Virus record (IMG/VR): IMGVR_UViG_3300036760_000522 | Location: 1-64,000 of that record | Reading direction: 5' to 3' (one strand) | Length of the DNA stretch: 64,000 bases | Shown here: positions 2,707 through 51,043 of the stretch, piece by piece | Layout: each line of letters starts with the position of its first letter | Numbering within the stretch: the first letter of the stretch is position 1 | Notes under the pieces: model-generated | What the model was told of the DNA's origin: nothing | What the model saw: the letters and a program-made list of their open reading frames with translations, nothing else | Database searches by the model: none | Position numbers and translations under genes: made by a program

Positions 2707-3333
2707 GTGAAAAAACTGCGATATTCGAAAGCCTGGGAAATACGTGTCAGCGGAAATCACGCTCTTTATACCCGGGCGGATTTTCAAGCGGAGCGTGTCA
2801 GTTACGATACCCCTACGCCACCGGCTATGGCCGGGATGCTTGAATCGATCCTGTGGCGTCCAGGTTTCAACTGGCGTGTCAGTGAGATTCTCGTCCTGAA
2901 CCCAATTCAGTGGACCAACCTCACTCGAAACGAGGTCAAAGAGATCACGTTTAGTAAGGGCTACGTCGATCTGGATCAGCAACACACACAACGACGATCC
3001 AGAATCCTCGTCAACGTTGATTGGATCGTGAAAGCCAAACTCGTAACAAGCACGGAAACACCTATACCAGAACTCCGAAAAATGGAGGCAATGGCCGAAC
3101 GGTATTTGGCTAACGGGAAATGCAACCACAGACCGTTCTTGGGTTGTAGAGAGTTTCCAGCAAAGGTCCGTCTAGTGAATGGGTCCGAGACTCTACCAAG
3201 TCCGGTCGACATCACGCGGCAGTTGGGCAGGATGCCACACAGCTACCGTTGGGTTCAGGACGTTCGAGCTGAGGTTTTCATGTTCGATGCCGAACTGAAT
3301 CGTGGTCGGCTCGTCGTTCCGGAGGTCGCATGA
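2707..3333 (+). CDS. cas5: type I-C Cas5 (Cas5c/Cas5d)
   Basis: ALYTR...ERVSYDTPTP.A..G.LESILWRP...VLNPI...RNEV and PFLGCREF signatures; GTG start at 2707 preferred (ORF track starts at TTG 2668). Confidence 0.92.
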   Translation: MKKLRYSKAWEIRVSGNHALYTRADFQAERVSYDTPTPPAMAGMLESILWRPGFNWRVSEILVLNPIQWTNLTRNEVKEITFSKGYVDLDQQHTQRRSRILVNVDWIVKAKLVTSTETPIPELRKMEAMAERYLANGKCNHRPFLGCREFPAKVRLVNGSETLPSPVDITRQLGRMPHSYRWVQDVRAEVFMFDAELNRGRLVVPEVA

Positions 3334-5024
3334 TCCTGGAAGCCCTTTGGGCCTACGCCCAAAAAGCACGTCTTGTTCCCAACGAGTACATGGCGCAAAC
3401 GGCGGGCCTCACTGTCGACCTAAACAAGCAAGGGGCCTTTCGAAGCGTCACCGCCAATAGGTTTTCAGTCGACGCCCCAACCCCCGTTCCTGCCAAACGG
3501 CCGGGTACGACACCTAAGCCATATCTGTTGGACCACGTTGGTTACGTGCTTGGATTGGGGACCGATCCGAACAAGCTAGCCCGGCGCAAAACACAACAGC
3601 GAGCCTACAAGGCATACGTTACTGACCTAGCAGAAACCGTCAAAAGTCTGCGACCGGTTGCCAAATTCTTGTCGGGACCTGTACCCAAGGAAATCAAGCA
3701 GCTGAAATGTGCGGATCACATCAAGGTGGCCTTCACCGTCAACGGCAAGTCGATCTACAAAGATTCAGGACTCAGAGCGCACTATCGCAGTCTGCGCAAG
3801 GAGACATCCCCTACGGAGACTTGTCGAATCACCGGCAAGCCTTGCACGCCAGGTTTTTTTCCACTCTTCAAAAACCTTCCAGGATCCAAAGGTTCAAACC
3901 TGATTACCTTCGAGGAGAAGGCGTGGCAATTTGACGGACGAGACTCTAGCAGGTGCTACCCGCTCTTGCGCGAGATTCGTGAGGGTGTTGCAGCTGCCTG
4001 GAACCATCTCACCGAACCAGCAGAAAAGGCGTTTTGGAATCGACGTTCAGCGTTCGTCCTTGAACGATCCAAAGGTACAGAAAAAGACGACAAGTCGAAG
4101 CCTTTGGCGATTTGGTGGACGTTAGCAGATGTTGATCTTAGTCCACTGCAACGCGTTGTGGAAGGACCTGTTTCCGGCAAGCCCTATCGGGAATTTATGG
4201 ATCAGGCTTTCCTCGATCTCTCAGCACTAGAGGTTGAGGGGGACCTATTTGTCTTGGTGGCACAATCGTACGACTCGTGTCCCGGACGTATTTCCGTTCT
4301 GGATTGGTTGGTCGTGCCCCTGAGAAAAGTCGCAAGCAACCTACGACAATTTCGAACTGAAACGGGCAATGCGACGCTGCGACGATTGTGTCGAAGCTCT
4401 CCGAGTTACCTAGTAAGTCAGGCCCTCTTGCGAGCCGCCTTGGTGGGAGAGGATTACCCGCCAGGTGTCATCCGAGAGCTGACTCGTCTAAACAACCAAC
4501 GTTGGCCGGATACTAACGGGCTAGCACCAGGACCTCTACTCACCGGCGTCACAGCCAAACTAATTGGAAAAGGAAATCACATGAACAACGGAAAAGATCT
4601 GGAAGAAGAAAGAGACAACCCATTCCACACGACGGACCCAAATTTTTGGGGCGGCTGTTTGGTAGCTCTGGGTAACCACCTACTGGCTGCTAATGGTGTT
4701 GGTGGGAACTTGGACGCACAACTTGACTCGATCAGCACTCAGCCAGGAAAATACTTTCCGAAGTTCGACGGCAAGGTCCGACGCGCGATCACACGACTCC
4801 GCAAGGCTCCGGTTGAGGAAAAACCCGAGATCCATACGGCCATCTCACACTACGACAGCTCGTACGTCAAGTTCGTACAGGACAGCAGCAAAGGCATCGT
4901 ACCACTGCGTTTGAGCGGCACAGAGTCTCTCGCTTTTCGACGTGGGTATGTCTTGCAGCAGCGAAGCCTAAGAGTCAACAAGGCCAAAACAGCGGAGAAA
5001 CCAGAGAAATTATCAGGGACATAA
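3330..5024 (+). CDS. cas8c: Cas8c (Csd1)-like large subunit, divergent
   Basis: MILEALWAY N-terminus, CRITG motif followed by LITF.E.AW, C-terminal AFRRGY..QQ; lies between cas5 and cas7. Confidence 0.8.
   Translation: MILEALWAYAQKARLVPNEYMAQTAGLTVDLNKQGAFRSVTANRFSVDAPTPVPAKRPGTTPKPYLLDHVGYVLGLGTDPNKLARRKTQQRAYKAYVTDLAETVKSLRPVAKFLSGPVPKEIKQLKCADHIKVAFTVNGKSIYKDSGLRAHYRSLRKETSPTETCRITGKPCTPGFFPLFKNLPGSKGSNLITFEEKAWQFDGRDSSRCYPLLREIREGVAAAWNHLTEPAEKAFWNRRSAFVLERSKGTEKDDKSKPLAIWWTLADVDLSPLQRVVEGPVSGKPYREFMDQAFLDLSALEVEGDLFVLVAQSYDSCPGRISVLDWLVVPLRKVASNLRQFRTETGNATLRRLCRSSPSYLVSQALLRAALVGEDYPPGVIRELTRLNNQRWPDTNGLAPGPLLTGVTAKLIGKGNHMNNGKDLEEERDNPFHTTDPNFWGGCLVALGNHLLAANGVGGNLDAQLDSISTQPGKYFPKFDGKVRRAITRLRKAPVEEKPEIHTAISHYDSSYVKFVQDSSKGIVPLRLSGTESLAFRRGYVLQQRSLRVNKAKTAEKPEKLSGT
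4581..5024 (+). CDS. cas11: putative Cas11 small subunit from an internal in-frame start in cas8c
   Basis: AAGGAAATCAC-ATG at codon 418 of cas8c; 147-aa product resembles the helical Cas8c C-terminal/Cas11c region. Confidence 0.6.
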   Translation: MNNGKDLEEERDNPFHTTDPNFWGGCLVALGNHLLAANGVGGNLDAQLDSISTQPGKYFPKFDGKVRRAITRLRKAPVEEKPEIHTAISHYDSSYVKFVQDSSKGIVPLRLSGTESLAFRRGYVLQQRSLRVNKAKTAEKPEKLSGT

Positions 5025-5069
5025 ATCGTCCTTGTCGGTAAAACAAAACCAACACGAATGGAAAATCAA

Positions 5070-5945
5070 ATGGCGACAGCTAAGAAAACAACACAGGTAC
5101 CCGCATTGGACGGGATCATCGTTCCAGAAACCGTCAACGCAAATCAAAACGGGGATCCAGATGACGGGGGCAATCCTCGTCGCAACGCCGTGACAGACAA
5201 AGGGCTCTGGTCACGTGAAAGCATCAATCGACGGATCCGGGATTACGTCTACGACGTTCACAAAGGTAAACCCGGGTTCGATTTGTTCATCAAACGAGGC
5301 AATGTCCACGAGACACTGATCCGGGAAGCGTACGTGAGTTCCGGAGCAGGAATCGACAAGGGCAGAGACTACGCTAAGGGCAACCTTGCGTTGTGTGAAA
5401 AGTATTTCGACGTGCGGTGGTTCGGACTTGTAGTCACCAAACCTGGTGACGGTGGGATCCGAGGGCCAATTTGCATAAATATTGGTGAATCTGTCTACCC
5501 TATAACGCACGAAGACATGGCGGGTACGAGACAAACTCGGACGAACGAAGAACGTGCCAAAACTGGCAGTCGGGAAATGTCCCACAAGCGGTTCATTCCG
5601 CACGCGGTTTTCACGATTACCTGGCACCTCGATCCGTTTTACGCACAACGAACCGGGTTCGACAAGAACGACTTGGAAATCTTCCTAGACGCGATTACAC
5701 GTGTCTTCAGGAACGATCACTCGTCTATGAGGGGGCGAATCAACCTCCGGTACTCGGTCGTGTTTGAGCACGAGGAGCCTACCCGCAATGCCGAGCCGTG
5801 TGATTTGTTCGAGCTCCTCAAAATCAAGGCAAAGGATCCGCATACGGCTTCGCAATGGTCGGACTACACCGTGACCTTACCGACGGCCAAAGATCTGCCC
5901 GCCGGTGTAACGATGAAAATCCTGCACGCAACGAAGGCTGCTTGA
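5070..5945 (+). CDS. cas7: type I-C Cas7 (Csd2)
   Basis: NANQNGDPDDGGNPR, R.IRDY, YFDVRWFG, GIRGPI.I motifs; alternative start at 5058. Confidence 0.92.
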   Translation: MATAKKTTQVPALDGIIVPETVNANQNGDPDDGGNPRRNAVTDKGLWSRESINRRIRDYVYDVHKGKPGFDLFIKRGNVHETLIREAYVSSGAGIDKGRDYAKGNLALCEKYFDVRWFGLVVTKPGDGGIRGPICINIGESVYPITHEDMAGTRQTRTNEERAKTGSREMSHKRFIPHAVFTITWHLDPFYAQRTGFDKNDLEIFLDAITRVFRNDHSSMRGRINLRYSVVFEHEEPTRNAEPCDLFELLKIKAKDPHTASQWSDYTVTLPTAKDLPAGVTMKILHATKAA

Positions 5946-5953
5946 ACCGCCCT

Positions 5954-5990
5954 TAGAGGACGAGTGCTGAACTTCAGCACTCGTCCTCTA
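5954..5990 (+). terminator. perfect 18-bp inverted repeat between cas7 and helicase (terminator/attenuator or mRNA-stabilising hairpin)
   Basis: TAGAGGACGAGTGCTGAA-C-TTCAGCACTCGTCCTCTA followed by TTTCTGATT. Confidence 0.6.
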
Positions 5991-6011
5991 TTTCTGATTG
6001 GAGTACGAATC

Positions 6012-8345
6012 ATGGAATTTCACGATTACCAAGCTGTTACCTTGGCCGACGCCTGTAACACAGATTGGAAATCTTACTACGTTTTGTGGGCAATGGCAGC
6101 CGGGAAAACGGCGTTTTGCCACGCTTACCTCAAGTGGGCTTTCGAGTGTGACGTCTATGACCACGCAGTAATCCTAACGCCCTACAAAACCACAAGGGAC
6201 GGATTCGTCACCCGTAAACTGGATGATGAGCGCCGCATCTTGTACGTCAGCGATCTGAAATACGACGTGAGAAAGGACCTGGTACGCCCGCTAGAATCGG
6301 ACTCAATCGCAGAGCTTCGTGAATACCTGCGCACACCAAAGCCTGGCTACGCTGTGGTAATTTGTGACGCCACAGCAAGAGCCTTCGTCCAAACGGGGGC
6401 TGACCAGAACGAACGCCTCATAGTAATTGGCGACGAGTGTCATGGCCATCAAGCCCCCGCGATGAGATCATGGGTAAACGCAATTCGAAGCCGCGGAGCA
6501 AAAACCATCAGTCTAACCGCAACACCCTATCGTCACGACAACGTCCCTGTATTGCCTCCACCAGGCACTAAGGGGGTTCGGTTGGGCCCAGTCCGCACGT
6601 ACACCGAGCAGGTACGGGACGGCCTGGCGCCCGACATCACGTTGAAGTGTATTCCTGTGGCCTGTGCAAACGCTATCAATGACGACGAACGCTTTCAGGA
6701 GATGGCTGCGGCAATCGTGGCTAATTGGTCACCAGATCGCAAAGCCATGGTTCAAATTACACCACGGGCTGCTGGTTGGAGCGGGCGCGAGGAGGACGAA
6801 CTGAACGAAGTCCAGAAAACTTTCTGCAACCAATTTCGATGTCGCATCATTGAAGCTCTCCAAAAGGCCAAGATCAGGTGCGTCGACATGACCGACTTTG
6901 AGGAGCACGACGGCTGTCCGCAGAACTATCAAGAGGTGTTACTCGCGGAACGTAAGGTCAGACATTTCAAGGACTCAAAGGTGGACGTCTTTATTGGGAT
7001 CAACAACATATCCCTAGGTGTTGATTGGACATTGTGTAACACAGTAATATCTACAGATTTTATGAGTTCCTTGTCTCGGATGGTTCAATTCAGTGGTCGA
7101 GGAGGTCGAAACAAAAAGGATTTCCTGTCATATCCGAATAGGTATCTAGACCAGATGGAGTTTTTGGTCTTGACACCTGTCAAGCGCGAAAACGAGGATG
7201 CTGTACGAATCCGGGAGATGGCTCGTCACGCCGTACTGCTGTCACTGACACTCTCTCAGTTGACACTTCCAGCAGGTTTGACAGGTTACACCGCCATCCA
7301 ACGGAGATTGCGTGAGATCCATGCCCCAAAGATTGCCACGGAGCTGCGAGACCACCTTGGAAGACGCGATCACTTGACTAAAGTCCACGCGAATACCGTC
7401 GTTGTCCTCTCTGATCAGTGGGGGCGAATCAAGGTAAAGAACCTCAGAGTATTACTCCTTCGACAACAACGGCAGCAGTATCCAGACGAGACCCCGGAGC
7501 AGAGACAACATGCTGTCGACGCGGCCATACAAGAGCTAGTGTCAGCTCAAGTGGATCCCGGACAGATCGAGAAAGCAGTAGCTTCTATCCCACTACAAGA
7601 AGGGACAACTCTCCGATACGTATTCGAGGAGTTGGTCAAGTGGTTCAACGACGAGTATATTGACGTTCGAATCAATCCGTTTCTCCGCAATGCAAGAGAA
7701 TTTGTTACTGAGTTCTACCCGGATACTTGCGACAATGTATTTCGCCGCCTCCGAGAGCTGCAACAAGAGGCTCTGGATCCGACAATCGTATGTGACTGGG
7801 CAATTGCCTTTTACAAAGAGCACGACAGATGGCCCGAGGCAGGCCCCATTCAGGAAGCACCGCACGTCTCCTGGGGGGATGTCAATCAAGCTCTCCTCCA
7901 CGGGACACGAGGGTTACCGCGGCTCCCCAACGGACTGTTGCAATTCCTCGGTGAATGGGCCCACAACCACAAACAGGTCCTCAGGGTGTTCTCGAGAGTC
8001 TTCCACGATATCCACCAGGACAACTCCACGGAGACGGAGTGGCGGCCTGTACTGAGCGCCCTAGGCATTCCAGGAACAGACAATATCCACGAAGCCTTTT
8101 TGCAATACGATCGTGCGCGATTGTCCTCCAGAGTCTACTTTGGTGAGCGGGAGCAAGCCGGATTCGAAGCAGCCATGTCCCACGTGGTGAAACACATTCA
8201 GCTGTTCCATTTCTTGCGGCTCTTCACGAAGGCTTTCTACAGTCGCCAGGGCTCGCATTGGAACTTCTGGTGGACAATTGCAGAAGCCCAGCGCCACGAC
8301 ACAGCTTTGACTATCAGACAACTCCGAAACCTTGCGAGCGGTTAG
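6012..8345 (+). CDS. Cas-associated SF2 (DExH) helicase lacking an HD nuclease domain
   Basis: Motif I AMAAGKT near residue 27, II DECH, III TAT, VI QFSGRGGR; no room for an N-terminal HD domain and no HD motif recognised; GGAG RBS before ATG 6012. Confidence 0.85.
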   Translation: MEFHDYQAVTLADACNTDWKSYYVLWAMAAGKTAFCHAYLKWAFECDVYDHAVILTPYKTTRDGFVTRKLDDERRILYVSDLKYDVRKDLVRPLESDSIAELREYLRTPKPGYAVVICDATARAFVQTGADQNERLIVIGDECHGHQAPAMRSWVNAIRSRGAKTISLTATPYRHDNVPVLPPPGTKGVRLGPVRTYTEQVRDGLAPDITLKCIPVACANAINDDERFQEMAAAIVANWSPDRKAMVQITPRAAGWSGREEDELNEVQKTFCNQFRCRIIEALQKAKIRCVDMTDFEEHDGCPQNYQEVLLAERKVRHFKDSKVDVFIGINNISLGVDWTLCNTVISTDFMSSLSRMVQFSGRGGRNKKDFLSYPNRYLDQMEFLVLTPVKRENEDAVRIREMARHAVLLSLTLSQLTLPAGLTGYTAIQRRLREIHAPKIATELRDHLGRRDHLTKVHANTVVVLSDQWGRIKVKNLRVLLLRQQRQQYPDETPEQRQHAVDAAIQELVSAQVDPGQIEKAVASIPLQEGTTLRYVFEELVKWFNDEYIDVRINPFLRNAREFVTEFYPDTCDNVFRRLRELQQEALDPTIVCDWAIAFYKEHDRWPEAGPIQEAPHVSWGDVNQALLHGTRGLPRLPNGLLQFLGEWAHNHKQVLRVFSRVFHDIHQDNSTETEWRPVLSALGIPGTDNIHEAFLQYDRARLSSRVYFGEREQAGFEAAMSHVVKHIQLFHFLRLFTKAFYSRQGSHWNFWWTIAEAQRHDTALTIRQLRNLASG

Positions 8346-8524: not shown

Positions 8525-9283
8525 GTCGAGACAGGGACCAAGGTCCCTGATGATTTCAACGACATCACCAGCGGCATGCTGCTCGCTGCCCCGGAGTCGA
8601 GACAGGGACCAAGGTCCCTGATGATTTCAACCAACGGACCGATCAAGACCTCTGGTAACGCCATCAGGTCGAGACAGGGACCAAGGTCCCTGATGATTTC
8701 AACGACCATGTTCGGAGAGGACGATGACGCTGTTCGCGGTCGAGACAGGGACCAAGGTCCCTGATGATTTCAACAACCCAGCCGGCGACGGTGGCGGCCC
8801 CGCCATGAACTGGTCGAGACAGGGACCAAGGTCCCTGATGATTTCAACACAATAACGCGGAGCAGATGAATGTCACAATTAGTTGGTCGAGACAGGGACC
8901 AAGGTCCCTGATGATTTCAACTCTGAGTTGAGTCCGCATATGTAGTCACCTACTTCGTGTCGAGACAGGGACCAAAGTCCCTGATGATTTCAACATGGAG
9001 GTCCTATGTTCGTTGATAACAATTGCACCGGGTCGAGACAGGGACCAAGGTCCCTGATGATTTCAACTCAGCGTGGCGACCAAGGAACGGACCTTACAGG
9101 TTGTCGAGACAGGGACCAAGGTCCCTGATGATTTCAACACTGGACGACCCCGCCGGCGCGCGACTCCACCATCAGTCGAGACAGGGACCAAGGTCCCTGA
9201 TGATTTCAACATGCCTGATCGCGTGCACGACTCCTCAGTAGGGGGATGTCGAGACAGGGACCAAGGTCCCTGATGATTTCAAC
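8525..9283 (+). CRISPR. CRISPR array, conserved block: 11 repeats GTCGAGACAGGGACCAAGGTCCCTGATGATTTCAAC (36 nt), spacers 35-38 nt
   Basis: Repeats start at 8525, 8596, 8668, 8739, 8813, 8886, 8959 (one substitution), 9032, 9103, 9175, 9248; stem CAGGGACC/GGTCCCTG followed by 11-nt ATGATTTCAAC. Confidence 0.98.
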
Positions 9284-9346
9284 GCGGCGAGCCGGCCCGG
9301 CGTCACGCGCCACAAGATCGATCAAAAACAGAGGCCTAAGCCTCTG

Positions 9347-9409
9347 ATGATTTCAATATTGGAGCCCTAACCCACGCGATATACGAGATTCCATTGTCCA
9401 GCAAGCAGG
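9347..9409 (+). ncRNA. candidate cas-regulating crRNA 1 (handle + spacer after first variant repeat)
   Basis: Spacer nt 1-11 (9358-9368, ATTGGAGCCCT) identical to 2696-2706 next to a TTC PAM. Confidence 0.65.
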
Positions 9410-10088
9410 GATGTGACAGGAGCCTTGGCTCCTGATGATTTCAACCCAGAGGCCCCTGGCGGTTTGGATGGACCCGAACTGACATGTGACAGGAGCCTTG
9501 GCTCCTGGTGATTCCAACAAGACAGGTGCTTAGGCACCTGATGATTTCAACGGAGTGCGCGTCGTTGCACAGCAGACCGAGGTGCTCGGATCGAAACAGG
9601 GACTCAGTCCCTGATGATTTCAACTTGTCCACCGGTGCATCCCAATGCACCGGTGCCGGAGCTTCAGCTCCTGTTTTTGACTCGTCAAGAACAGCGTTGA
9701 AGCACCTGATGGTTTCAATTCTTGTACCGATCCTGGCTTCACTAGAACGACAGCAGGACGTGACAGGAGCCTTGGCTCCTGGTGATTCCAACATGAGCGC
9801 CGCCTCGATGCGATCCTCAACGCCTTCAAAACGACAGGAGCTTCAAGGCTCCTGATGATTTCAACACACTGCACAGCGAGTCCTCGACAGCATTGGCATC
9901 GCCTCAAGACAGGGGCTACAAGACTCCTGATGATTTCAACACTCAACAACAGGTGGCAGAACGAGGCCTCTCGTATACAGGTGCTTAGGCACCTGATGAT
10001 TTCAACCAAAGCGCCCGGTCCATCGGGATGCACTGCGCCTTCAACTGGAACGGTGATTGTGTATGAAGCAAGAGCAAAAAAGCCCCTG

Positions 10089-10134
10089 GGGATTTCAATA
10101 TTGGTGCCCTATCGTGTTTGGTATGAAAAGTCTA
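10089..10134 (+). ncRNA. candidate cas-regulating crRNA 2
   Basis: Spacer from 10100 (ATTGGTGCCCTAT) matches 2696-2708 except at positions 6 and 12. Confidence 0.55.
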
Positions 10135-10985
10135 GTCAGTAACAGGGGTTCAACCCCTGATGATTTCAACTCGTATCGATGGTATGTCGAACTTGAGCGG
10201 GCAAAATCAGGAGCTTAAGCTCCTGATGATTTCAACAAAGGCAAAGTCGATCGAGAGACTACTGTGCCAAAATCAGGGGATCAATCCCCTGATGATTTCA
10301 ACATCGACAAGCAGGGATTCACCGGAGCGTTGCTGGTTGTCGGTCCAGGGGCTAGGTCCCCTGATGATTTCAACGCGCAGACCATCGACGGCGTAATCGA
10401 AGAGCTCTCGGTCAGAGACAGGAGCTTCGGCTCCTTGGTGATTACAACAAATGCACACCGGCCGGTCTTGTCGGCGCCCCGTCAGTAGCAGGGGTTCAAC
10501 TCCCCTGATGATTTCAACCAGCCCGAAGCTCTAGAGGACGAACTCGCGGCGATGACAGGAAACAGGGACCTTGGTCCCTGATGATTTTAACGTTGAGAAA
10601 CCAGGGCTGTTCCTTCAGCTTGGCCTGTCGAAACAGGGACTCAGGTCCCTGATGATTTCAACATCAAAAGCTCAAAGGCTTGACGGACTTCGTGGGGATC
10701 GAAACAGGGACTCAGGTCCCTGATGATTTCAACCTCTACGGGATATCGGCCATCCGAGATCGCCAAAAAACAGGAGCTGAAGCTCCTGATGATTTCAACT
10801 ACCAATCGTGTTCGTCGAGAGCCCCCAAGATCGAAGACAGTCAGGGGCTTAGGCTCCTGATGATTTCAATAGCACAGTGGACGGGCGCGACGCTGTTGGT
10901 GTACTATCTGGTCATCGGTATCTTGTCGAGATATTGTGCCTTTCGGCTGTGGCCAGATAGCTGACTTGGAGGAGGCCCCACGAAA

Positions 10986-11354
10986 ATGAACGAAGAAATC
11001 GATGCGATGTACTTACAGCACTGCCCTCATTGTGCGGGGGTGCATGTCGAACCCGTCCAACTTCCTGAGCCGCAAACGGCACGAAGACTTGCGTGCGGGA
11101 ATTGTCACTTCACGGCGGAAGAGGAACAATTTCGGGAGTACCAAAAGGCACGAATAAGGGAGTCCGAGCTACTGGCGCATTGCCGGGAGCAGTACGAGAC
11201 GTTGGTTCTTTTCGACAGAGTCGTCGATGTTGAGCCCTTACCTGCTGAGTGGTGTGAGGTGATCGACACATACCATCGCAAATGTGTCGCAGCTCGAGAG
11301 GAAGCTTTCTTCAGTAGCTTCGACAGTGCGATGTCGGTCCAGAATCGAGTTTGA
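10986..11354 (+). CDS. zinc-ribbon hypothetical protein
   Basis: CPHC...CGNC; GGAGG upstream; stop inside the repeated element. Confidence 0.65.
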   Translation: MNEEIDAMYLQHCPHCAGVHVEPVQLPEPQTARRLACGNCHFTAEEEQFREYQKARIRESELLAHCREQYETLVLFDRVVDVEPLPAEWCEVIDTYHRKCVAAREEAFFSSFDSAMSVQNRV

Positions 11355-11375
11355 ACCCGTCAGATGTTGAGAGGT
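11346..11375 (+). repeat. dispersed 30-bp element, copy 2
   Basis: 29/30 identical to 1727-1756. Confidence 0.9.
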
Positions 11376-11419: not shown

Positions 11420-11450
11420 GTTTGAACCCGTCAGATGTTGAGAGAATAAT
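11420..11450 (+). promoter_or_regulatory. dispersed element copy 3; sigma70-like promoter upstream of RHH gene
   Basis: TTGAAC-17 nt-AATAAT (11422-11450). Confidence 0.55.
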
Positions 11451-12081: not shown

Positions 12082-12477
12082 ATGATGCAGCCTAAGTTGT
12101 GGCCCGTCTCGTTCGATATTCCGTCAGGTGGCGAAACGTCTAGCCATCATTCGGGGAACCCTACGGGAGCCAAGCAGGATTTGAGGGCACAACCTCCTGT
12201 AGCGGTGGACGGGACACAACAAAGACTCGCGCCAGTACAGGGCGAGGACCGCAACGAGGACGGTTCAGCGCCTTCTCCTCGACCACGCGACGGTTGGGTT
12301 GTGAAGCCGGGTCGCATCTCGTGGTCCGAGCACCTGGAGGCATTTGAGGCGTATGCTGAGCAACATGGTCGAGAGCAAGGACCTGAGCGCATGGCTGAAC
12401 GTGGCGGATTCAGTTACTACGAGTTGCTAATGTTTCTTGGACATCAGCCCAAGACGTGGGAGCCTCGCAAGGGCTAA
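12082..12477 (+). CDS. hypothetical phage protein
   Basis: ORF; C-terminal ISW.EH.EA..AY...G..Q..ER.AERGGF resembles phage hypotheticals. Confidence 0.6.
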   Translation: MMQPKLWPVSFDIPSGGETSSHHSGNPTGAKQDLRAQPPVAVDGTQQRLAPVQGEDRNEDGSAPSPRPRDGWVVKPGRISWSEHLEAFEAYAEQHGREQGPERMAERGGFSYYELLMFLGHQPKTWEPRKG

Positions 12478-42412: not shown

Positions 42413-43972
42413 TCTATCGTACGTAACTGATATTCCAGTGCTGTCCTCGGTCTCTAGGGCATCGCTTTTTAGTACTTCTTGTGCGAACAAAACGTCTGTG
42501 AAAGCCTCATCTTCTGTGTTGAGTGCGTCCGCCGAGGCTTCGACTTCGTACCAGAAGTCTATGTGGAGACCGTCGCCTGCGTAAATCGTGTCGTAAACTT
42601 CGACCGCCGAGGCTTCGACTTCGTACCAGAAGTCTATGTGGAGACCGTCGCCTGCGTAAATCGTGTCGTAAACTTCGACCTCAATTTCGGTGACGGACAC
42701 AAAGAACGAAGCCCTAATGTAGTAGGTGTCGGAAACATGCGACGTGCTGATGTCGACGGTGTCCAGAAGAACGCGATCGTGTGTGAGACTGACGCCGCAC
42801 GTGTCACCAACACTGATCGTGTTGTCGATGTCGATCACACTCTCAGTGCCCGCTAGCGCACTGGTAATCTGATCCGCTACGGTTACAACGTCTTCAACTT
42901 TTCGATCACTTTGGCTCTCGATTACGACCAGTTCTGTGTGGCTGATACTGTCTTGGTTTTCTCGGCTGTAGGCTGTGTCAGCAGAAGTTGTGTCGCTTGC
43001 AGTGATCTCGTCGGTGATCGATCTGAAGTGTTCCAGGGAGACGTAATCTGTGATTGAAACTTCGTCGTTCAAGAACAGTGTTTCGACTACGGTTGTGTCG
43101 ACTAGCACCAATTCGTCAGACAGCGCTACGAACGTCTCACGTGAAATCGTGAAGCCGTCCAAGACACCTATGGTGTCTTGGACGACTCGATCGACAACAA
43201 CGTCAAATGTGGTCTGATCGGTTACTGTGAGCGCATCGTTCGTTTCCCGTAGATGTTCGGCGGATCGATCCGAGCTGTCTGTTGTTGAGAGACCATCTTG
43301 CAGGTTTAGGGACAGGTACAAACTCCGTAGAGTTTGGTCGCTGAAGTCTAAGGAATCCGTGACAATAGTCGCCAGATACAAGCTGAGGGCAGCTTGGTCC
43401 GTGAAGCTCGCCGTGTCTGTGTTCGTGACTTGCAGTGAGAGACTGGTTTGTGTTTGGTCAGTTGTGTTGAACGCATCTTCAGCAAGAACAGAGTAGACGA
43501 CCACGAGGTTGATCGTGATTTGATCACTTAGCACCAAAGAATCAGAAGCACTTGAGGTAACAGATAGATCGACGTTTGACTGATCTGTCAGGTCAACGAC
43601 TTCTTGGAGTACTCGGACGAAACTGCCTTCTGTGTTTAGGTTGTCTGTGAGCGCCAGGACTTCAGACAAAAGACGATCGGCTGCCAGGTCACGAGCGACA
43701 GTGTCTGCGCTGACAACTGTGTCTGTAGTCGACCGATCAAGTGTGGCGTTTGAGACCCCACTGTCCGTGACGGATAGTGTGTCGGTAGCTGATCGATCGT
43801 AGGTAAATTCGTTGGATACTTGGTCCGTCAGTGCGACAGTTTCATTGACGGAGACATCCAAAGCTGTGGCGGACGTCGATGATGTGTCAGGTAGAAGGCC
43901 GAGTTCCGCCGCAGCCCCGTCCCATAATTGGGACGAAGGCAACCCAATGTCGAATAGGCCGATGGCTGACAT
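42395..43972 (-). CDS. acidic ~20-aa-repeat protein (putative virion fibre)
   Basis: (F/Y)xRxxxDx(I/V)xxTD repeats, D/T/S/V-rich. Confidence 0.7.
   Translation of the reverse strand: MSAIGLFDIGLPSSQLWDGAAAELGLLPDTSSTSATALDVSVNETVALTDQVSNEFTYDRSATDTLSVTDSGVSNATLDRSTTDTVVSADTVARDLAADRLLSEVLALTDNLNTEGSFVRVLQEVVDLTDQSNVDLSVTSSASDSLVLSDQITINLVVVYSVLAEDAFNTTDQTQTSLSLQVTNTDTASFTDQAALSLYLATIVTDSLDFSDQTLRSLYLSLNLQDGLSTTDSSDRSAEHLRETNDALTVTDQTTFDVVVDRVVQDTIGVLDGFTISRETFVALSDELVLVDTTVVETLFLNDEVSITDYVSLEHFRSITDEITASDTTSADTAYSRENQDSISHTELVVIESQSDRKVEDVVTVADQITSALAGTESVIDIDNTISVGDTCGVSLTHDRVLLDTVDISTSHVSDTYYIRASFFVSVTEIEVEVYDTIYAGDGLHIDFWYEVEASAVEVYDTIYAGDGLHIDFWYEVEASADALNTEDEAFTDVLFAQEVLKSDALETEDSTGISVTYDRSILYR
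42529..42680. repeat. exact 75-bp tandem duplication (25 aa)
   Basis: VEVYDTIYAGDGLHIDFWYEVEASA encoded twice. Confidence 0.95.
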
Positions 43973-50323: not shown

Positions 50324-51043
50324 ATGGGAACAGTTCTTCATCGAGTTACACTTGAGCTGCTTGAGAGTGTCAACACACCTGATTTCAATCCAGGTCTTTA
50401 TCTGGTCAATCCAGATCTCAGCGCAGTTATTGGACAGCCAAAAAAGTATTGGAAAGTTGTCGGATCGAATGTCGTACTAAAAACTCTGCCTGAGCAGGCT
50501 ACTGCCGATAAGCAGGAATTACCTGCGACCAAGAGACAGTTGTTAGACGCTGTTGATTCCAAATCCGAAGCTTTGATCACTGACGGTCCGGGTCTCGAGC
50601 ACCCAATTGGTAGCGGGAAATTCATCAGCATGAGCATGGGGGCGCAGCTCAAGTGGATCGGTTGGCAGGACATCGCAGACGACTGGACTTCGTTGGGTCT
50701 TCCTTATCCGTTTCGAGTTCGTACCCGTTATGATGATGACTTCATCGAGATCCAGAATGCTGCTGAAGTGAAGGCTGTACTTGGCGAGATGGCACAGTTG
50801 ATAGCTAAGATTTTGACTGAAGCGGAGTACGTCAAGGCGGCTATTGTGAAGGCTACAACACTGACTGACGCTGAGTCCGCTGCTGACAAGTATTTGGAAG
50901 CGACCACCCATCAGTTGCTCTTGTCTGACCTCGTCGACATGACCGATGACGTGGCAGTAGTCCTAGAGGTTCTATTTGATGCGATTGAGATCACAGATCT
51001 CGTAACGAATTTGCTCACGAATTTGCTCACGATTCAAATTTGA
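50324..51043 (+). CDS. putative tail-fibre accessory/assembly protein
   Basis: position after fibre genes; helical composition. Confidence 0.5.
   Translation: MGTVLHRVTLELLESVNTPDFNPGLYLVNPDLSAVIGQPKKYWKVVGSNVVLKTLPEQATADKQELPATKRQLLDAVDSKSEALITDGPGLEHPIGSGKFISMSMGAQLKWIGWQDIADDWTSLGLPYPFRVRTRYDDDFIEIQNAAEVKAVLGEMAQLIAKILTEAEYVKAAIVKATTLTDAESAADKYLEATTHQLLLSDLVDMTDDVAVVLEVLFDAIEITDLVTNLLTNLLTIQI

Follow-up and report, generated by a model that had tools for sequence, protein, structure and literature searches.

Autorepression of CRISPR-Cas loci by crRNA-like RNAs is already known from bacteria. Thus, CreR (Cas-regulating RNA) combines a repeat-derived handle with a guide of which only the PAM-proximal bases match a PAM-flanked site at the promoter of the effector cas operon, and its repressive effect is shown experimentally for I-B, I-E, and V-A systems, with creA-like elements noted by eye in I-C loci (10.1101/2023.03.10.532045). 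Regulatory mini-arrays with partial, seed-biased matches to cas promoters are widespread, with 7% of I-C loci holding a mini-array and every 6th base being exempt from matching in class 1 systems, and they are proposed to arise by duplication of terminal array units (PMC10120712). Viruses, in turn, carry Cracr arrays, in which several crRNA-like guides are directed at host cas promoters, including I-C (10.1101/2024.10.29.618823). In CreTA a seed-only guide (the CreA antitoxin RNA) directs Cascade to the promoter of the CreT toxin, and in type II-A systems tracr-L, a natural guide with short complementarity, represses the cas promoter (autoregulation of Cas9). Finally, a type I-C variant with a helicase instead of Cas3 is reported from huge phages (PMC7162821). 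The locus described here appears to combine these themes: two spacers inside the array of a phage-encoded, apparently nuclease-less I-C variant match only the beginning of a site in the predicted promoter of the phage's own cas genes, which is likely a self-limiting feedback loop.

The window analyzed is the first 64 kb (64,000 nt) of the 301,550-bp IMG/VR contig IMGVR_UViG_3300036760_000522. It carries phage-type genes, namely an endolysin, a tail-fibre-like protein, a large protein with weak terminase-like and helicase matches, and a DNA methyltransferase. The + strand encodes cas5c at 2707-3333 (Pfam Cas_Cas5d 2.5e-15; NCBIfam Cas5c 4.5e-32, above its cut-off), cas8c (Csd1) at 3330-5024 (Pfam Cas_Csd1 9.4e-20), and cas7 (Csd2) at 5058-5945 (Pfam Cas_Cas7 5.4e-56, with an NCBIfam match), and thus has the effector gene set of type I-C. 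Public gene calls start cas5 40 codons too late (168 aa instead of 208, i.e., 2707-2826 is left out), whereas the N-terminus from the GTG at 2707 aligns with relatives; the late start hides the fact that the start codon abuts the promoter and the target site.

The gene in the Cas3 position (frame 5964-8345) probably starts at the ATG at 6012, which aligns with the start of the helicase of a relative. For its product only Helicase_C and ResIII matched in Pfam, no hit was obtained in NCBIfam or PDB sequence searches, and no HD nuclease domain was found in any of the three. A search of a set of 5.8 billion proteins returned only the query itself, with no relative of comparable length. There is no room for cas4, cas1, and cas2 in the operon, since the helicase gene ends at 8345 and the array starts at 8525, and no Cas1, Cas2, or Cas4 match was found among the neighboring proteins scanned, which were the upstream ORFs and those at 10986-11354 and 12082-12477 but not all flanking ORFs. 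The system therefore matches the helicase-bearing I-C variant of huge phages (PMC7162821), which corrects the plain type I-C reading of the first-pass annotation.

The array occupies 8525-10870 on the + strand and contains 33 repeats of 36 nt. R1-R11 are identical apart from one base in R7, whereas R12-R33 (9322-10870) differ from one another, and most of them keep a 7-bp hairpin through compensatory changes as well as the 11-nt handle ATGATTTCAAC. In 22 distinct repeats 96.8% of cells are paired and 4 of the 7 pairs show changes on both sides; none of 500 shuffles reached the observed paired fraction or covariation score. A covariance model of the repeat scores 31 copies at 27-53 bits (nearly all at 41-53), while R17 and R22 reach only about 13-14 bits. 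Some variants recur: R13, R14, and R18 share one stem, R15 and R21 another, and R30 and R31 another. Diversified repeats are also seen at the end far from the leader in the relatives' arrays (L122, about 6740-7290 on the minus strand, and L203, 1-600; both loci are introduced below). This pattern looks like long-term selection for processable crRNAs without repeat homogenization, and perhaps protection against recombination. The + orientation of the array is supported by three arguments: the conserved handle lies 3' of the hairpin, as in type I-C, the uniform repeats lie next to the operon, and the PAM/seed geometry works only in this orientation.

Several irregularities are found within the array. 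R14 and R15 (9483-9551) abut and overlap by 3 nt with no spacer between them, and a similar repeat-on-repeat junction precedes the regulatory guide in L122. Spacer 16, a degenerate repeat (9657-9683), and R17 fold into a very stable double hairpin (9625-9719, −45 kcal/mol, z = −6.05), which includes a terminator-like stem plus T-run at 9658-9671 and could be an internal terminator or insulator. The last 12 nt of spacers 11 and 32 are nearly the same (CCACAAGATCGA and CCCCAAGATCGA), each being followed by a repeat ending CAAT (R12 and the terminal R33, respectively), and the two 49-nt stretches at 9310-9358 and 10823-10871 are 78% identical. This suggests that the R12 unit was once a terminal unit and that the array grew by fusion or duplication of sub-arrays. 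A CAAT ending was also considered as a marker of regulatory units, but was rejected because R17 and R33 end CAAT without a target and the L122 guide follows a CAAC repeat. Outside the array, weak hits of the repeat model at 50360-50389 and 50530-50563 lie inside a 239-aa ORF and were rejected as chance, and an Rfam search found nothing. Two perfect copies of a 25-nt sequence (11349-11373 and 11420-11444), 71 nt apart just after the small zinc-ribbon ORF downstream of the array, do not resemble the CRISPR repeat, and a perfect 75-nt tandem duplication (two copies, 42529-42680) lies inside a 525-aa ORF on the minus strand.

The match reported by the first-pass annotation is real, and the sequence reads exactly as described there. 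Repeat 12 (9322-9357) ends CAAT and is followed by spacer 12 (9358-9409), which starts with ATTGGAGCCCT (9358-9368). The same 11-mer lies at 2696-2706, directly after TTC (2693-2695), which in turn lies 15 nt after TTGACA (2672-2677), and it ends at the GTG of cas5c (2707), with GGAG at 2699-2702. Nothing in spacer 12 matches beyond position 11. Repeat 22 (10064-10099) also ends CAAT and is followed by spacer 22 (10100-10134), which starts with ATTGGTGCCCTAT (10100-10112) and matches the target (2696-2708) at positions 1-5, 7-11, and 13, with mismatches at 6 and 12. TTC is the type I-C PAM according to PMC7913775 and is taken as the PAM of this variant by analogy; it lies on the coding (non-target) strand.

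A scan of all 33 spacers for TTC plus positions 1-5 and 7-11 on both strands of the window (128 kb of sequence) gave only these two spacers at this one site, and no further target of any spacer was found in the 64 kb. The pattern ATTGGNGCCCT, i.e., the 11-mer with position 6 left free, occurs 3 times in the window against 0.11 expected from shuffles, and 0 of 100 shuffles reached 3. The expected number of chance hits anywhere in the window is 0.06, which is not tiny, but within 100 nt upstream of cas5 it is about 1e-4. The two guides are paralogs and do not count as two independent hits, so a chance 11-mer counted twice has to be considered. The location exactly at the predicted cas5 promoter speaks against this explanation, and the relatives described below contradict it, leaving it very improbable.

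Spacers 12 and 22 agree at 11 of 12 positions in 1-12, but only at 7 of 23 beyond, and their repeats agree at 17 of 20 positions in the handle half, but only at 4 of 16 upstream. Thus, only the handle plus the seed has been kept, and the one difference within the seed is at position 6, which Cascade does not pair. Repeat 12 has an intact hairpin, also seen in the fold, scores 46.7 bits, and ends with the handle ATGATTTCAAT; repeat 13 (9410-9445, 49.8 bits) is intact and would supply the 3' hairpin of crRNA 12. Spacer 12, however, is 52 nt, longer than the usual 35-38. Repeat 22 keeps 8 of 11 handle bases but has lost the 5' half of its hairpin (13.3 bits, E 0.22; no hairpin in the fold), although repeat 23 (10135-10170, 45.8 bits), which would supply the 3' hairpin of crRNA 22, is intact. 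The second guide may therefore be poorly processed, and the redundancy of the two guides proposed by the first-pass annotation is uncertain.

Covariation of guide and target in homologous loci, which had been named beforehand as a criterion for rejecting the regulatory reading, was examined in relatives. Cas5 of this system has very few relatives among 5.8 billion proteins, and most of them sit on short contigs; in addition to the window, two distant lineages have both guide and promoter. In L122 (a locus from Logan DRR198489, Cas5 about 47% identical), which has the same operon with a homologous helicase, the array lies upstream of cas5 on the opposite strand. Its terminal spacer, starting at 6811 on the minus strand, matches the + strand site 7437-7453 at positions 1-11 and 13-17, with mismatches at 12 and 18. 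This site follows a TTC (7434-7436), which is 5 nt after TTGACG, and lies between this −35-like box and the GTG of cas5. In L209/L210 (the third Cas5 lineage of the clade, 65% identical to the protein of clade locus L203), a repeat (138-172) recognized by the window's repeat model is followed by a guide that matches positions 1-5 and 7-11 of a TTC-flanked site about 50 nt downstream, inside the cas5 promoter, with mismatches at 6 and 12. A hairpin plus T-run that looks like a terminator (read by eye) separates guide and promoter.

The three guide/target sequences are unrelated to each other, and guide and target thus do covary. Chance expectations per locus are about 7e-7 for L122 (19 specified bases), about 3e-5 for L209, and about 1e-4 for the window (promoter only). 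All internal mismatches fall on positions 6, 12, or 18, the bases that Cascade flips out, with a joint probability under random placement of about 4e-6. Three further clade loci (L203, L205, and L206) have the promoter, each with a TTC between the −35-like box and the start codon, but lack the relevant array end, so that the covariation rests on three loci. According to these results, the interpretation of the first-pass annotation, i.e., that the phage tunes its own Cascade level with internal guides, is supported.

A relic of common descent without function, in which the promoter region and the guide unit both derive from a duplicated terminal repeat-spacer unit and the similarity is decaying, might also produce such matches. 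Indeed, in L209 the target is directly preceded by a degenerate repeat handle (GCGATTTCAG) and lies only about 50 nt from the guide, and duplication of terminal array units is the origin proposed for mini-arrays (PMC10120712). Neutral decay, however, would scatter the mismatches, whereas here they fall only on positions 6, 12, and 18, and between spacers 12 and 22 only the handle plus seed is kept. Moreover, in the window and in L122 guide and target are 6.6 kb and 0.6 kb apart, on the same and on opposite strands, respectively, with no clear repeat before the target. This explanation is therefore unlikely, and an origin by duplication would not exclude function.

Searches of other collections generally gave no further clade members. 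In IMG/VR a two-handle pattern and Cas5 searches found only the window's own contig, and a scan with a 14-nt handle was swamped by chance matches. No related cas5 or other clade member was found in 185,579 GTDB species genomes, and GenBank phages held neither a close Cas5 nor a DNA match. The more distant Cas5 hits P0012 and P0016 are classical cas3-cas5-8-7-4-1-2 loci and do not belong to the clade. A metagenome scan with the Cas5 alignment returned mostly ordinary I-C loci (33-39% identity), which served only as a background set. Among them, however, a group of human-gut I-C loci (L170-L185, e.g., L172 4700-4915, minus strand) carries a solo diverged repeat with a TATAAT box (read by eye) just upstream of cas5, probably between cas3 and cas5. 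It is followed by a guide beginning AGTTGATTTTA and a terminator-like hairpin, and the guide matches TTC plus AGTTGTTTTTA about 25 nt (read by eye) before cas5, with the only mismatch at position 6, i.e., a CreR-like element in bacterial I-C.

In all six clade promoters a TTG[AG]C[AG] box ends 29-32 nt before the cas5 start codon, and a TTC lies between box and start codon. A −10-like hexamer, according to spacings read by eye, follows 17-18 nt after the box and is separated from the start codon by only 6-8 nt. This geometry implies a leaderless or nearly leaderless mRNA, so GGAG may not be an RBS, and the claim that the site covers the RBS of cas5 is doubtful. The site more likely covers the −10/+1 region, as it overlaps the putative −10 (CATTGG, 2695-2700) and runs into the GTG. 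The promoter itself is only predicted, however, since a strict sigma-70 consensus scan calls no + strand promoter at 2672-2700 and the −10 of the window is poor.

Taken together, the observations are best explained by a CreR-like negative feedback loop. In this view, the array is transcribed on the + strand and cut by Cas5c at the base of each repeat hairpin, and crRNA 12, and possibly crRNA 22, is loaded into the phage's own Cas5-Cas8-Cas7 complex. The complex would recognize the TTC at 2693-2695, pair only its first 11 bases with the template strand at 2696-2706, and keep RNA polymerase off, lowering transcription of cas5-cas8-cas7-helicase. Pairing that stops after the seed would give reversible binding without a full R-loop. 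Because the guide would be co-transcribed with 32 other spacers, a fixed small share of complexes would carry it, and promoter occupancy would track the total Cascade level, resulting in homeostasis. What the analysis, which is computational throughout, establishes is the sequences, the TTC next to the site, the seed pattern, and the covariation in relatives; the role of TTC as PAM, the processing of the crRNAs, the position of the promoter and transcription start, the binding, and the repression itself are inferred. The explanation is nevertheless held with fairly high confidence.

It is also possible, although unlikely, that Cascade binds at the site with an outcome other than repression of initiation, such as loading the helicase at the start of the operon or marking the locus for another purpose. 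The helicase that replaces Cas3 is of unknown function and without relatives of comparable length in the protein set searched, which leaves room for this reading. In contrast, seed-only pairing does not give the full R-loop that recruits Cas3-type partners in studied type I systems, and the position over the −10/+1 region is the classical repressor position. A more speculative and rather doubtful reading is that the I-C variant of huge phages is not an immune system at all, but a phage-owned programmable repressor, with the long array of diversified repeats serving as a stable bank of regulatory guides kept by selection. Diversification would then protect the repeats against recombination, and the array-internal self-guide would be the homeostat that sets repressor dosage. 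Array-resident self-guides would be the ancestral state from which stand-alone CreR mini-arrays budded off, with the guide embedded in the array in the window, at its end in L122, and in a mini-array in L209.

Compared with viral Cracr arrays (10.1101/2024.10.29.618823), the guides here are likewise virus-encoded and array-borne and match a site in a predicted cas promoter, but Cracr RNAs hijack the host's Cas proteins and silence the host's locus, whereas here the cognate cas5-8-7 genes lie next to the array and the target is the phage's own promoter. The guides might still be weapons that silence the cas promoter of a host or of a competing phage with a related I-C system, the match to the phage's own promoter being a by-product of homology, and the presence of two versions of the guide could be read in this way. 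However, promoter targets differ between clade members and each guide fits its own locus, the two versions differ only at position 6, which does not pair, and no related cas5 was found in the GTDB genomes. This alternative therefore seems unlikely, although it cannot be fully excluded. In CreTA a seed-only guide also directs Cascade to a promoter, but here the regulated gene would be cas5 itself; no toxin gene is apparent at the target and no divergent gene lies at 2410-2700, and the upstream ORFs run on the + strand, although small RNA toxins cannot be recognized from sequence. The tracr-L case follows a similar logic in a class 2 system with a different RNA and effector.

The helicase-bearing I-C variant of huge phages (PMC7162821) has the same gene set (cas5, cas8, cas7, and helicase), lacks cas1/cas2, and comes from a similar huge-phage context, but self-targeting guides, the promoter site, and the diversified repeats do not appear to be described there, nor in any paper of the library searched. 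The survey of regulatory mini-arrays (PMC10120712) looked for repeats outside arrays in bacterial and archaeal loci, so that array-internal guides and phage-encoded Cascades were not its subject; L122 (terminal spacer) and L209 (a guide resembling a mini-array with its own terminator) fit the path from terminal array units proposed there, and the three layouts in one small clade give a concrete picture of how mini-arrays may arise. As for CreR (10.1101/2023.03.10.532045), the window agrees with it in the repeat-derived handle directly preceding the guide, in complementarity limited to the PAM-proximal part, in the position of the target at the predicted promoter of the effector operon, and in covariation of guide and target. 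CreR, however, is encoded by a stand-alone degenerated mini-CRISPR in a cas intergenic region, whereas here the guides are spacers 12 and 22 of a 33-repeat array, where array-masking pipelines would not look for them, and would be made in fixed proportion to the ordinary crRNAs. This sets a different feedback logic, since stand-alone CreR senses competition from crRNAs, while here the Cascade dose itself would be sensed. Thus, RNA-guided cas autoregulation as such is already known; what differs is that the guide sits inside a long array, that the owner is a huge phage, and that the effector is the uncharacterized, apparently nuclease-less I-C variant, for which the locus yields an inferred PAM (TTC) and a seed rule (every 6th base exempt).
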